A DNA stretch of 63,478 bases, the filler included, from Octopus bimaculoides (taxonomy: Eukaryota): assembly GCF_001194135.2 (NCBI RefSeq). It is 2 parts of 2 records of this genome, joined end to end, with 100 filler letters (N's around TTAATTAATTAA, not from the genome) between each part and the next. Parts side by side here need not be neighbours in the genome. Positions count along the whole stretch, not along the records: positions 1 to 31,527 come from NC_068988.1; 1 more part is not named here. One strand, written 5' to 3'. Both the position numbers and the translations under genes were made by a program. The notes under the pieces were generated by a model. That model made no database searches and had not been told where the DNA came from. It worked only from the letters and a program-made list of their open reading frames with translations. Below are positions 765 to 7,000 of the stretch, piece after piece. The first letter of the stretch is position 1. Each line of letters opens with the position of its first letter.

Positions 765-1018
765 CCCTCGAGCAATGATTGCTAAGAAGCAGCCATTCAT
801 GGCAGCTGATGGTTTGAACTTGATGTATTTATCTTGAAGGCCAATCTTATTTTGAATGTCATCTCTGTTGAATGGTAAAACAGGAGGAACAACTTTGTAA
901 ATGGAATGACTGGAGTGGACAAATGAGTTGACGTATTCCAGAGTCTTTGATACAGCCACTTCATTTTCTAGGTCATGGATGGATCTGGTCAAGTAGACCA
1001 CACCTTTCACGTTAGGGA
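765..1018 (-). CDS. NSUN7: NSUN7-like exon 9 (motif VI and end of the methyltransferase fold)
   Basis: Acceptor TATATTTCAG|TC, donor GGG|GTGAGT. Encodes (F)PNVKGVVYLTRSIHDLENEVAVSKTLEY...YKVVPPVLPF...KFKPSAAMNGCFLAIIARG. Confidence 0.92.
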
Positions 1019-4000
1019 CTGAAATATACAAGAATTTTCATTAGGAACACATGGTGTGTATGTATGTGGGCATGTGTATATATATATATATAGATATTTA
1101 TACAATCAAGGATAAAATCTTAATAAGATTTTACCAAAGTAGCCAGCATGTAATAAAACCATATCGGTAACAATTAATACAAAATATATAATTATAATAA
1201 GGGCACTAATGAGTAGCACCACATACTAGAAATAGATGCGAAATGGCTCTAAGAACTACATATATATATATATATATATATATATATATATATATATATA
1301 TATANNNNNNNNNNNNNNNNNNNNNNNNNNNNNNNNNNNNNNNNNNNNNNNNNNNNNNNNNNNNNNNNNNNNNNNNNNNNNNNNNNNNNNNNNNNNNNNN
1401 NNNNNNNNNNNNNNNNNNNNNNNNNNNNNNNNNNNNNNNNNNNNNNNNNNNNNNNNNNNNNNNNNNNNNNNNNNNNNNNNNNNNNNNNNNNNNNNNNNNN
1501 NNNNNNNNNNNNNNNNNNNNNNNNNNNNNNNNNNNNNNNNNNNNNNNNNNNNNNNNNNNNNNNNNNNNNNNNNNNNNNNNNNNNNNNNNNNNNNNNNNNN
1601 NNNNNNNNNNNNNNNNNNNNNNNNNNNNNNNNNNNNNNNNNNNNNNNNNNNNNNNNNNNNNNNNNNNNNNNNNNNNNNNNNNNNNNNNNNNNNNNNNNNN
1701 NNNNNNNNNNNNNNNNNNNNNNNNNNNNNNNNNNNNNNNNNNNNNNNNNNNNNNNNNNNNNNNNNNNNNNNNNNAGGGTGCAGACAGTACTTGAGGACAC
1801 ATGCATTTTTAGTCATTATTTTATTTGACTAATTTTTATTGAACTACTCTTTTAGAAAATAACAATGACAGACCCTATGTTTACAAATGAAATGAAAATC
1901 ATGCTGTGATTGTGGCTCTGAAGACTAAGCATGGTAATTTAGAAATTTCTCATTTTCTAAAAGTTGCAAGATCTTTTGTCCACAAGATTCAGTGTGAGTT
2001 AGAGAAAGAAGATGGAAGCATATTACCTGTATCAAAACGTAAAAGACATTCCAAATGCTCTGATTTTATCAGGACACCTGAATTTATTCAGGAAGTTAAG
2101 TAAAGCATTGAAGACAATCCAGGAAAATCAATGAGGTTAATTGCAAAAACATTTCGTGTGTCAGAAAAACAAGTAGAAATGCTGTGCATTAAGAGATCAT
2201 ACGTGATGTGGAGAGGTCAATTCATGTCAGAAAAAAACAAAAGAAAACCATTTAATTAGATTCAAAAGACTTTTGAACAAACTTAAAAATTCATCAAAAG
2301 ATGGTGTGATTTGGTTTTTCTCAGAAGAGAAAAACTTTGACCAGGACCAGAAAATTAACAGAAGAAATGACAGATGGTTATGTACAGACCCTTCTGAGGT
2401 TCCAAGGGTAATGCACACAAAATTTCCTGCATCATGATTTTAGGTGTTGTTAGCAATGAAGGACATGTGATGGCTCCTCACTTTTTTACACAAGGCCTAA
2501 GGGTGAATGCTGCTGCATATATTGAGGTTCTGGATAAAGTTGTTAAGCCATGGATCAACAGTGTATGCAATGGAAGGCCTTGTCTTTCAACAAGATTCTG
2601 CACCATCACACAAGACTCAAATGACACAAGAATGGCTGGCCAGCAATTTGCATGATCACATCACCACCAACATTTGGCCTCCTAATTCTTCAGATCTCAT
2701 TCCACTGGTCTACTATGTATGGAGCATCATTGAGAAAATATATATCCCATGGGAACCAGGAAGCCAGCCCTTGTAAGTTAGCATAACTTAAGAAGGCAAC
2801 TCTACATTTACCGTCAGCTAAGCAGATCAAAGCAACATGAAATACTTTGTTTATTGTGTGTGTGTGTGTGTGTGTGTGTGCGTGCACATGTGTTATACGT
2901 GTTCTGTTGTTTTGACTCTATGATGGCTGATGATTACCATACAAAATCAGAAACATCGTGTCTACTTACAGAGAAGCGAATGCTTGAGGTATTCCATTTC
3001 CTCTTTACACAGACCTTCCAACTGTTCCCTGCTGACACCACCACGTGATAAGGTTTTCAGGACACTGATATCTGAAGAAGGAAAAGAAGAAATAGTACTA
3101 GCCTGAAGTGGGTGAGAATAAGAACTCACCAAATGCAGAATTTGTACTTCATGTTTTCGAGCCCAATGCAATATAAAGCAAAGTTAAACTCAATGGGGTT
3201 TGAACTCAGAATATAAAGACCTGGAAGAAATACAGCAATTGTTAAAGTGTTGGATAAAATGTCTCAATTTTCTGCTATCTTTTCACATTTTGTCACACTT
3301 TGTCTAACACTGTACTGATTATGCCGGTCCAATAATAATAATAATAATAATAATAATAATAATGATAATAATAGTGATTTCAAATTTTGCCACAAGGGCA
3401 GCAATTTTGGAGAAGGAGATGAGGCAATTACATCAACCCCAGTGTTCAATTGGTGCTTATTTTATTAACCATGTAAGGATGAAAGGCAAAGTTGACCTCA
3501 GCAGAATTTGAACTCAGAACTTAGTGACAGGTAAAATACTGCAAAGCATTTCATCCAGTGTGCTAATGACTCAGCCAGCTCCATGCCTTAGTAGTAGTAG
3601 TAGTAGTAGTAGTAGTAGTAGTAGTAGTAGTAGTAGTAGTAGTAGTAGTAGTAGTAGTAGTAGTAGTAGTAATAATAATAATAATAATAATAATAATAAT
3701 AATAATAATAATAATAATAATAATAATAATAATGATGATGATGATGATGATGATGATAATCACGTGATCATGTGATCAACCAGACTATTGGTTGTTGTAA
3801 TTACATTGTTGATCACAATGCATATTGCATAGTTTTAGCTTCTAAATGATCTCACCTGAATGGCTAGGTGAGCAGGCCAACATTGCTCCTGGCTGGAAAG
3901 CTAGTCCATTGTAGAGTTACCTGTTTAAAGTTGGGTCGACTGGAGCAGCATGAAATGACATGCTTTGCTCAAGAACACAACGTGCAGCCAGTTTGGGAAT

Positions 4001-7000
4001 CAAAACCAGAATCTCTCAATCATGAGGGAAATGTGCCTAACCACTATGTCTTCATCATCATCATCATTGTTCAACGTCCACCTTCATGCTGGCATGGGTT
4101 GGATGCTTTGACTGAAAACTGGTAAGCCAAGGGGCTGCACCAGGTTCCAATCTGATCTGGCAATGTTTCTACTGCTGGATGCCCTTCCTAATGCTAATCA
4201 CTCCAAGAGTGTAGTGAGTGCATTTTACATGCCACTGGCATGGGTGCTATTGACCTAATACCAGCATCAGCCATGTCTACAGTCTTACTTGGCTTGACAG
4301 GTCAACACAAGCATGGTATATCACCAAGGGTCTACCCAAGCACGGTATATCACCATGTGCCTTCATAATAATGATAATAATAATAATCCTTTCTACTAAA
4401 GGTACAAGGCCTGACATTTTGGGGGAGGGGACTAGTCGATTACATTGACCCTAGTGTTTCACTGGTGCTTATTTTATTGACCCAGGAAGGATGAAAGGCT
4501 AAGTTGACCTCAGCAGAATTTGAACTCAGAACACAGACACAGACGAAATGATGCTAAGCACTTTACCCGGTGTACCAATGATTCCGCCAGCTTGCTGCCT
4601 TAATAATAGTAATGACAATAATAATAATAATAATAATAATAATAACAATAATACACTCACCTTCTCCTTCGTTAATCACAAAATCAACTGGGCTGTTTAA
4701 AGCAGACTTGCTACACTTGGCCGTCAACAAGATTATTCTGATAGCTTTAAACTTCTGATCATCTGGAGACAAATCTAAGAATGATTCTGTCAAGAGTTTT
4801 ACATCTGTAGAAAGGTTAAGGTTTCAGAATATATATAAGTATATACATGCATATATTCATGTATATATATATATATATATATATGTATATAGGTTATGAG
4901 TGGTAGTGGTGTCAATGAGACCCAGAGGTGTCAGGTAATGCTGAGTAAGTGCTATGGATAGACCATAGTTAAGCTCCAGGATCGGTGATAATGCAAATAA
5001 GGGGTCCAACGTAGGTTATATATCAGAGTGTGTATATAAAGATTTACTTTTCATAGGCTGTGTAGATTTTAGAACATCTATAAATAGAAGGTCTTACAGC
5101 TGTTTCCAGGATATTTATTATATCCCTTCATCGGAGACGGTGTGAGAAAATGGTTGAGCAATAGTTAATTTAGATAAGATATGAAATTGAGAGTGAATTG
5201 GAGGAATGAAAATAGATGTGAGATATGCAGGGATATTGTATTTGTAAATCCATTATTTAGGCAGAATGGTATACATATAAGATTCCAGTACCTTATGAGT
5301 AAAATCCAATAGTCTTTAAAATTGGTCATTCCAAGTATAGAGTTTATACACAGTGCTATTGAATCAAGGGTTTTATTTAAAGTGACCTAAAAGTAGGGAA
5401 TGTATTGTTGCTTCTCAAAGAACAATTATTTTATTTTACTGCATTTCCAGCCCCTATATTTTATTAGGTTGGTAAAACTTGTTCTTTACTTAAATTCTAT
5501 TTTTATTTCTTCTTATTTCTCTCATTTTTTCTATATTCAGATTATTAATGATAATATAGAGTTTTAATGTGTTTTGTAAAGTGCTTTGGTAATTCAAAAA
5601 TTGATGATCAGACATCTGAAAAATACAGTAATCCAGCAACCCTCTGGTCTTGGTGCTAGACAGGAGGAGGTTTACTGTGTATAGTAAACCATTCATATAT
5701 ACAGGGTGTCCACAAAGTCTGGGTACATGGGGATTAATACATACTTTAAGAAATTATTTCTTATATTTAATTGTTTATATTTTGATTTTATTTACTCCAT
5801 GTACCCAGACTTTGTGGATACCCTGTACACACACACACTCATAAGAATTAGTGATCATTTGTTTATATGAATTAGTTGGGAAATTGCATATCTCCATTGG
5901 TGGATTATTTATAGGTCTCTGTTCATGGAATCTGTGAAGGATAGAGGTGTGGTGGCGAAACTGTGAGTGGCTGAAGAATGGTTGGGGAATGTCTGGAAGG
6001 AATGAAGAATAGTGTCATCTGCATAAGAATAGGCATTGTAGGATGAGGGGGTAAGTCATTAGGAGAGTGCAAGACAAACCCTAATTGTTGGGTGTGTTAG
6101 AATCGATTCAAAATTAATTGAAAGAGCTCCATCAACATACATGCAAAGAGTGTGACCTGATGAAAAGTTAGAACTTCCAAGATATTATATATTTTAATAT
6201 GTCTCATAATTATTACTAATTTACAAAGTAATTAGTGAAAACTGAAGACATTTTAGGTAATTAGAATTTAAACAAAGACATTAACTGCAATTAGTATTCA
6301 ATGATTAATATTTTTCATTAGTTTTGTTTGTTTTTTTTAGTAATCAACATAAAGAGAATTTTTTTTGTATTTTTTTCAAATGGATACTTTTGATGTCCAG
6401 AAATTCTAGATTTTTCTGAGCAGATTTAAGATGGTTTGGGTCCACCAGGCCCCAAATACGACATTTGGTGGAGCAGAGTAGACTGGCCACATGAGCTGTA
6501 GCTAGGGCTGAACCTATGTTGACATGCATCACTTCATCATCATCTTGAATTAAAGGTGCCACAGACAGTGGTGCAATGCAACTTGACTTGTCCTGACAAT
6601 GAAACAAAATGAAAGTTATGGGGCAAAGAGATGCATAAATGCATGCACACTGGCACACAGATACATACATATATACACATACACAACACACACATAGATG
6701 ACACATACAACACACACACGTATATATATATATATATATATATATATATATATATATATATATATATATATATATATATATACACATGCTCAACACACAC
6801 ACATACACATCAAAAACATGCGCAATACATACACACCACACACACATGCACTTATGCAACACACGCATACACACATGCACACACACATATATACATACAT
6901 ACATACTGCACACAAGCACACATACACAGCACACTTGCACATGCTACACACACACACACACACACACACACACAAACACATACACGCACATGCAACATAT

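Follow-up and report, generated by a model that had tools for sequence, protein, structure and literature searches.

The window analysed here is a stretch of 63,478 nucleotides of the Octopus bimaculoides genome (NCBI RefSeq assembly GCF_001194135.2), consisting of two parts separated by 100 filler letters, of which positions 1 to 31,527 are derived from NC_068988.1. Its minus strand carries the gene encoding NSUN7. The original prediction, which was made from the sequence of the window, held that the product of this gene is an NSUN7-like protein that lacks the catalytic cysteine of the NOL1/NOP2/Sun methyltransferases, and that it is a probable pseudo-methyltransferase. The present analysis supports that claim, in that, as shown by alignment, the deduced protein lacks four catalytic or cofactor-binding determinants, and yet retains the predicted fold and is under purifying selection. 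The gene, exons 1 to 9 of which lie in the window, very probably encodes an NSUN7 orthologue in which the methyltransferase fold persists and the reaction has been lost, and which likely serves as a non-enzymatic binder, as in the mouse.

Coding sequence and active site of octopus NSUN7

A search of the exon boundaries yielded a single solution comprising nine exons, bounded throughout by canonical AG and GT splice sites, the translation of which is 100% identical to residues 1-615 of P0005, the 769 amino acid 'putative methyltransferase NSUN7' of O. bimaculoides recovered by homologue search. When the window was searched with P0005 using tblastn, all nine exon matches were likewise 100% identical, and residues 616-769 are encoded past the window start. 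The open reading frame (ORF) is, as had been claimed, intact over nine exons. Exon 7 ends in phase 1 (...GAA G/gt, with the splice site marked by a slash), exon 8 extends from ag/AT ATC... to ...CTC T/gt, and exon 9 begins at ag/TC CCT.... The N-terminus encoded by exon 1 is of low complexity, rich in Asn, Lys and Thr, and is probably disordered, as judged from a predicted local distance difference test (pLDDT) score of ∼30 in the AlphaFold2 model.

Catalysis in the NOL1/NOP2/Sun enzymes involves two conserved cysteines and an aspartate: the motif VI Cys attacks C6 of cytosine, the motif IV Asp binds both S-adenosylmethionine (SAM) and cytosine, and the motif IV Cys acts as the general base. 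In the octopus gene, the minus strand of exon 9 reads ...PNVKGVVYLTRSIHDLENE..., in which the AGA codon at 986-984 encodes Arg542 (P0005 numbering), and that of exon 7 reads ...IRIILLTAKCSKS..., in which ACG (4724-4722) encodes Thr476, AAG (4718-4716) encodes Lys478 and TGT (4715-4713) encodes Cys479. The best sequence match in the Protein Data Bank (PDB) was human NSUN5 (2b9e; phmmer, E = 2e-18), and the resultant alignment places octopus 'vvylTRSihdlene' over 'lvysTCSlcqeene' of NSUN5 at motif VI, 'iilltakCSks' over 'yilldpsCSgs' at motif IV, and 'vmhvnigsalatahva' over 'vidacaapgnktshla' at motif I. Arg542 is aligned with the Cys of the NSUN5 YSTCS sequence, and the T-C nucleophile of motif VI is therefore absent from the octopus protein. 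At motif IV, the D-(A/P)-(P/S)-C signature is replaced by T-A-K-C, with Thr in place of Asp, Lys in place of Pro, and the Cys retained. Both the codons and the NSUN5 alignment therefore bear out what had been read previously at these positions, namely Arg in place of the motif VI nucleophile at exactly 984-986, and Thr and Lys in place of the SAM-binding Asp and the Pro of a motif IV that keeps its Cys. The SAM loop of motif I, (D)xCAAPGxKT, is also degenerate, HVNIGSALAT being aligned with DACAAPGNKT such that AAPGxKT has become IGSALAT, which represents a further loss beyond those described earlier. The associated argument that adenosine-to-inosine editing could not restore the Cys is sound, since edited AGA would be translated as GGA, AGG or GGG under the genetic code, and never as TGY.

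The AlphaFold2 model, which was built with a 20-sequence alignment, contains a confident core spanning residues ∼190-616 (pLDDT mostly >90). The top Foldseek match to this model was again human NSUN5 2b9e (E = 3e-18, template modelling score of 0.84 on the target, 24% identity), with later matches to RsmB/Fmu, NOP2, archaeal and human NSUN6, and NSUN4. A helical N-terminal domain is followed by an NSUN5-type ferredoxin-like domain (PF21148) and a class I methyltransferase fold, which is the domain order of the family, and the methyltransferase fold is retained in octopus NSUN7 as modelled. The Pfam model for the catalytic domain, PF01189 (Methyltr_RsmB-F), was not reported for the octopus protein at a max_evalue of 10, although the HMMER filters drop most matches above ∼0.1 even at this setting; with respect to the 27-bit cut-off of PF01189, the Sinanodonta and Lottia proteins score 32.2 (above) and 25.4 (below) respectively. 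NSUN5 and its yeast counterpart Rcm1, a 25S/28S rRNA 5-methylcytosine (m5C) methyltransferase, share with the octopus protein the NSUN5_N-like and ferredoxin-like domains, and the QD(K/R)(S/A)SC, ENE and G(C/F)F motifs. However, NSUN5 is active with intact DACAAPGNKT, DPSCS and YSTCS motifs, and the octopus protein departs from all three.

Evidence of selection on the intact gene was sought by pairwise comparison of octopus with Argonauta hians over 383 codons (exons 4-9), in which four methods gave an approximate ratio of nonsynonymous to synonymous substitution (dN/dS) of 0.15-0.20, with dN ∼0.21 and dS ∼1.0-1.4. These values indicate that octopus NSUN7 has been subject to purifying selection. 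Among 30 mollusc orthologues, comprising bivalves, gastropods and cephalopods, motif VI reads T-R-S in every case, which answers in the affirmative the question of whether TRS is fixed in molluscs. Of the 385 columns of the core, only 39 are invariant, that of Arg542 being among them.

NSUN7 orthology and motif states across the family

A set of 1.84 billion representative proteins was searched exhaustively with a profile, and the best 150 matches were aligned to the profile and their motifs read; source names were recovered for 30 of these 150 representatives. Mollusc proteins match vertebrate NSUN7 at E = 1e-72 to 1e-108, compared with only 1e-14 to 1e-33 for fungal NSUN5, and proteins from invertebrates that are named as NSUN7 score 350-710 bits against the NSUN7 profile but 80-220 bits against the NSUN5 profile. 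In a neighbour-joining (NJ) tree with NSUN5 as the sole outgroup, the molluscs lie inside the NSUN7 clade and apart from NSUN5. The octopus protein is grouped with the named NSUN7 of bivalves, gastropods, nemerteans, annelids, Lingula, Saccoglossus and Patiria, in a group that also takes in Ciona, amphioxus, lampreys and other vertebrate NSUN7. The octopus protein displays further traits of the orthogroup, including a non-acidic residue (Thr476) in place of the motif IV Asp, a degenerate motif I, and a C-terminal tail motif, EHxKVVxHPxPFR, which is present in P0005 as AEHKKIVNHPKPFR and in the alignment consensus, and is encoded past the window start. The NSUN7-like identity assigned to the gene is upheld by the match to P0005, the profile search and the tree, all of which indicate orthology. 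A word-index homologue search that started from an alignment of 25 diverse sequences added no further phyla, as only 11 molluscs were recovered, probably because low-complexity words crowded the candidates.

Residues at the nucleophile position were counted on the NJ tree rooted on NSUN5. Arg occupies this position in 53 of the 76 non-vertebrate NSUN7-like representatives, His in 15 and Cys in only one, i.e. the nucleophilic Cys is missing from 75 of 76. Within the vertebrate clade (n = 65) the corresponding counts are 40 Cys, 10 Arg and 6 Ser. Only one non-vertebrate representative (1/76) retains the motif IV Asp, and none of the vertebrate representatives aligned at that position does so, L, T, M or I being found there instead. 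Motif states in individual lineages are presented in Table 1; most vertebrates other than those listed have T-C-S at motif VI. As read from these alignments, NSUN7 proteins outside the vertebrates normally lack the nucleophile, as opposed to this being a peculiarity of cephalopods or molluscs, and Cys at this position is essentially limited to vertebrates.

Table 1. Motif IV and motif VI sequences of NSUN7 proteins from animals other than molluscs
Source	Motif IV	Motif VI
Tubulanus, Lineus (nemerteans)	TAECS	T-R-S
Owenia (annelid)	SAECS	T-R-S
Helobdella (leech)	CAECS	T-R-S
Lingula (brachiopod)	TAKCS	T-H-S
Strigamia (centipede)	TPECS	T-H-S
Abscondita (firefly) and nine related representatives	TPPNS	T-H-S
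Didymodactylos (rotifer)	NPPCS	T-Y-S
Seison (rotifer)	NVDGS	T-T-S
Saccoglossus (hemichordate)	TPPCS	T-H-S
Patiria (starfish)	TPQDS	T-N-S
Branchiostoma (amphioxus)	NPPNS	T-S-S
Ciona (tunicate)	TPQCT	T-R-S
Lampetra (lamprey)	TPPCS	T-C-S
Eptatretus (hagfish)	MPPCS	T-C-S

Both motif cysteines are gone from the insect-type clade (P0149-P0151, P0156, P0164 and others), from Patiria (P0052) and from Branchiostoma (P0105), in which N or D is found at the motif IV position and H, N or S at the motif VI position. Since these members of the family have neither Cys, the conserved function of the family cannot need either thiol.

Loss of the motif VI Cys was also observed in some vertebrates, with T-S-S in Numida meleagris (guinea fowl; P0029/P0035) and Pleurodeles waltl (newt; P0134), and T-R-S in the opah Lampris incognitus (P0071) and nine similar teleost-like representatives. 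These cases contrast with the published claim that vertebrate orthologues keep both motifs.

Beyond the animals, a clade of ten representatives combines T-R-S at motif VI with E-P-P-(N/S)-S at motif IV and a half-preserved motif I. Its named members are the zoosporic fungi Olpidium, Polychytrium, Synchytrium and Rhizophlyctis (P0142, P0157, P0161 and P0176), the remaining six being unnamed. The fungi that could be named among the best 150 representatives are all zoosporic, and other fungal matches are NSUN5. With this chytrid-type sister clade included, Arg at the nucleophile position is distributed across molluscs, annelids, nemerteans, Ciona, some teleosts and the fungal proteins, and Fitch parsimony on the NJ tree assigns {R} to the whole NSUN7-like clade, with the metazoan node being an unresolved set. 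The assignment depends upon the chytrid-type clade; in its absence, Arg and Cys bilaterian ancestors proved equally parsimonious when we counted steps along the accepted species tree. The fungal proteins score approximately equally against the NSUN7 and NSUN5 profiles, rendering the orthology of the chytrid-type clade uncertain, and Arg is therefore not claimed here as the ancestral residue. That NSUN7 was already a pseudo-enzyme before the bilaterians radiated, with Arg ancestral at the former nucleophile position, could be envisaged from these sequences but is on balance doubtful. If it were true, then the vertebrate Cys would be secondary, arising for example by a CGY-to-TGY transition, as opposed to a remnant of catalysis; the conserved Arg would serve a function of its own, such as holding RNA; and the distribution would link the family to motile flagellated cells, as in the zoosporic fungi and animals sampled. 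The zoosporic-fungal NSUN5/7-like paralogue may itself represent an ancient dead-enzyme lineage tied to flagellated cells.

Feature coordinates, assembly gaps and repeats

The features of the locus are presented in Table 2. The first of the two assembly gaps was considered as a potential site for a hidden exon, which was rejected. The phase-1 junction between exons 8 and 9 (...LKHSLLF/PNVKGVVYLTRS; spliced reading ...NEGEDISVLKTLSRGGVSREQLEGLCKEEMEYLKHSLLFPNVKGVVYLTRS) is in frame and aligns without gaps to Lottia (...LKHAMRFSKVQAVVYMTRS) and to Sinanodonta, and in A. hians the same two exons are ∼950 bp apart with no intervening exon needed. This collinearity and the exon spacing in Argonauta indicate that the gap hides no coding sequence. 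The genome of A. hians, which is an independent assembly, has AGA at the codon equivalent to that of Arg542, and ACA-GCA-AAG-TGT at motif IV. Cys at this position in orthologues, which would have been a sign of assembly error in octopus, was not found among molluscs, Arg being present in 30 of 30.

Table 2. Features of the NSUN7 locus in the window (positions count along the whole stretch)
Feature	Position	Strand	Description
Exon 1	19972..20267	-	ATG at 20267-20265; GT donor; 100% tblastn match to P0005 residues 1-99
Exon 2	16669..16991	-	Start of N-terminal helical domain; AG/GT sites
Exon 3	14429..14487	-	59 bases, encodes YQSVLSNLLRHCRFYRLFPD; required for reproducing P0005
Exon 4	12199..12479	-	NSUN5_N-like helices, KTKLSAWLARHRIKA...VYIWVNQLKT; weak Pfam match to PF21153
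Exon 5	9708..9888	-	Ferredoxin-like domain; Pfam PF21148 NSUN5_fdxn-like, E = 4.6e-14, above curated cut-off
Exon 6	6388..6592	-	QDKSSC and degenerate motif I, HVNIGSALAT at 6526-6497
Exon 7	4661..4804	-	Motif IV as ILLTAKCS; Thr476, Lys478, Cys479
Exon 8	2970..3071	-	Encodes (D)ISVLKTLSRGGVSREQLEGLCKEEMEYLKHSLL; upstream of assembly gap 1305-1774
Exon 9	765..1018	-	Motif VI as VVYLTRSIHDLENE, Arg542; then conserved ENE and GCFLAI motifs
Assembly gap	1305..1774		Inside intron 8 (2969-1019), with (TA)n repeat alongside
Second assembly gap	15409-16290		Inside intron 2
ORF fragment	2507-2773	+	Intron 8; like Tc1/mariner-type DDE transposase
SINE-like repeat copies	1-230, 4056-4235, 9071-9358, 11337-11582, 15283-15408, 26389-26568, 30102-30289, 30510-30629		

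The annotated NSUN7 protein of A. hians (P0001, 503 aa) omits exon 8 (DISVLKTLSRDGISEKELKELSKEETYYLQHSF) and starts at an internal Met. Exon 8 is intact in the Argonauta genome, at L001:16100-16198, and its omission is an annotation error as opposed to a biological difference.

An interspersed repeat resembling a short interspersed nuclear element (SINE), ∼180-250 bp in length, is present in at least 8 copies in both orientations, with 75-97% identity between copies. Several of these are located within NSUN7 introns, one adjoins the gap at 15409, and the repeat translates to a recurring 'LRTGEPDGCTRLQSDLAEFLQLDALPNANHSESVV' pseudo-ORF. The transposase-like ORF fragment in intron 8 has PF13358 (DDE_3) as its sole Pfam match, with an E-value of 0.023 that is below the curated cut-off, and is probably a decayed transposon. 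Pfam scans of two other intronic ORFs, at 2207-2434 and 10092-10349, returned no matches. The introns are also rich in long microsatellites, including (TA)n, (CA)n and trinucleotide runs, several of which flank the assembly gaps.

Proposed non-enzymatic function of octopus NSUN7

The concept of a catalytically inactive NSUN7 that serves the sperm flagellum without acting as an enzyme has been described previously for mouse and human. In the study by Li et al. (Nat Commun 2025; PMC12804707), knockout of mouse Nsun7 left RNA m5C unchanged, and SAM was not bound by the NSUN domain of either mouse or human NSUN7 in isothermal titration calorimetry because motif IV reads LPRCS instead of DAPCS; the mouse L378D substitution restored SAM binding. 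Loss of NSUN7 resulted in a damaged axoneme and mispositioned longitudinal columns in the sperm tail, and the protein was shown to act non-catalytically in flagellum assembly (PMC12804707). That work dealt with vertebrates only, and stressed that both motif cysteines are kept there; it agrees with the description of vertebrate NSUN7 in the original prediction, i.e. Leu at the motif IV Asp (as in LPRCS), the Cys kept, and a requirement for sperm motility (PMC12804707). Buev et al. (PMC12785897) reported that fertility is preserved in mice carrying a variant presumed to be catalytically inactive, and argued for a scaffold function, and in the pearl oyster Pinctada the expression of an nsun7 contig rises during spermatogenesis (PMC4082630). 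A literature search found no paper describing the motif state of invertebrate NSUN7. The new point to emerge from the alignments presented here is that nearly all NSUN7 proteins of invertebrates lack the catalytic Cys, often with a conserved Arg in its place.

Vertebrate NSUN7 and the octopus protein belong to the same orthogroup and have the same domain order, a replaced motif IV Asp, a degenerate motif I, a retained motif IV Cys and a conserved C-terminal tail motif. They differ at motif VI, which is mostly T-C-S in vertebrates but T-R-S in octopus and in all sampled molluscs, and at motif IV, which is L/T-P-x-C-S in vertebrates, T-A-K-C-S in octopods and T-A-D/N/E-C-S in other molluscs. A lack of SAM binding and a non-catalytic role in flagellum assembly have been shown by experiment for vertebrate NSUN7, and are predicted for the octopus protein. 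The changes at its active site suggest that octopus NSUN7 would neither bind SAM in the canonical manner nor form the Cys-C6 adduct, and would not be an m5C methyltransferase. By homology with mouse NSUN7, it would most likely bind RNA or protein in spermatids without acting as an enzyme, with a role in assembly of the sperm flagellum; such a role in octopus is proposed by analogy, from homology and the literature. The conservation across the family of QDKSSC, Y-x-T-x-S, ENE and GCF suggests that the cleft continues to serve as a surface for binding, and the former active site and substrate cleft could feasibly have been reused in this way, with the conserved Arg perhaps contacting RNA phosphate or filling the old cytosine/SAM pocket.

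Pseudoenzymes with a methyltransferase fold are familiar from DNMT3L and METTL14, which have lost cofactor or catalytic residues and are kept for binding or scaffolding. These proteins belong to subfamilies that are unrelated to NSUN7, and are obligate partners of an active paralogue; NSUN7 is not known to have such a partner.

Several alternative explanations were weighed against this interpretation. The presence of an assembly gap and many microsatellites at the locus raises the question of whether the Arg codon arose through a mistake in sequencing or assembly, or whether the gap conceals frame-changing sequence, such that the true protein has a Cys. However, the gap is intronic, the junction of exons 8 and 9 is in frame and collinear with that of orthologues, Argonauta has AGA at the same codon, and Arg is found in all 30 mollusc orthologues, as well as in nemerteans, annelids and Ciona, which renders an error scarcely credible. 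It is also very improbable that the protein is a divergent, mollusc-specific paralogue of NSUN5 to which mammalian NSUN7 biology would be inapplicable. The best PDB match and the Pfam domains do bear NSUN5 names, but no NSUN7 structure was among the sequence or fold matches from the PDB copies that were searched, NSUN5 being the nearest solved relative, and the E-values, the bit scores against the two profiles, the nesting of molluscs in the NSUN7 clade and the C-terminal tail motif common to other NSUN7 proteins are all at odds with such a paralogue. Similarly, there is very little likelihood that the gene is a decaying relic, functionless and under relaxed constraint. Such a state would fit with the loss of the catalytic residues and with the failure of the Pfam catalytic domain model to detect the protein, but not with nine intact exons and canonical splice sites, the dN/dS relative to Argonauta, the 39 core columns, Arg included, that are invariant over 30 molluscs, a well-packed fold that is confidently predicted, and the retention of orthologues across bilaterian phyla.

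A further possibility, which is unlikely but somewhat less so than the preceding three, is that NSUN7 is still a methyltransferase or some other thiol enzyme, in which the motif IV Cys is the nucleophile and the Arg has some other catalytic role. DNA m5C methyltransferases and DNMT2 do use a motif IV Cys as nucleophile, and Cys479 is invariant in the molluscs and kept in most vertebrates. Conversely, two elements needed for SAM binding, namely motif I and the Asp of motif IV, are gone; vertebrate NSUN7 with the same loss of Asp does not bind SAM (PMC12804707); and insect-type, starfish, amphioxus and chytrid-type members have N, D or S in place of the motif IV Cys. The favoured interpretation, that octopus NSUN7 is a non-enzymatic binder, does nevertheless have points that count against it. 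The invariance of Cys479 over 30 molluscs would permit some thiol-dependent role, and Aguilo et al. (2016), as summarised in PMC6409601, ascribed methylation of enhancer RNA (eRNA) to mammalian NSUN7. In addition, the value of dS relative to Argonauta is near saturation, making dN/dS approximate; the inactivity of the octopus protein is deduced from sequence; and the proposed flagellar role draws upon mammals and one bivalve expression study.

The status of NSUN7 as an enzyme has been disputed, with eRNA methylation claimed in 2016 and inactivity shown in 2025. The comparative pattern described here, in which the SAM-binding Asp is absent from essentially all NSUN7-like proteins and the nucleophilic Cys from nearly all of the non-vertebrate ones, with purifying selection persisting, provides independent evolutionary support for a non-catalytic role, and indicates that the function of NSUN7 is old as opposed to being specific to mammals. 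It also draws attention to an Arg that is invariant at the old catalytic centre, and indicates that the annotation name 'putative methyltransferase NSUN7' overstates the capacity of these proteins.

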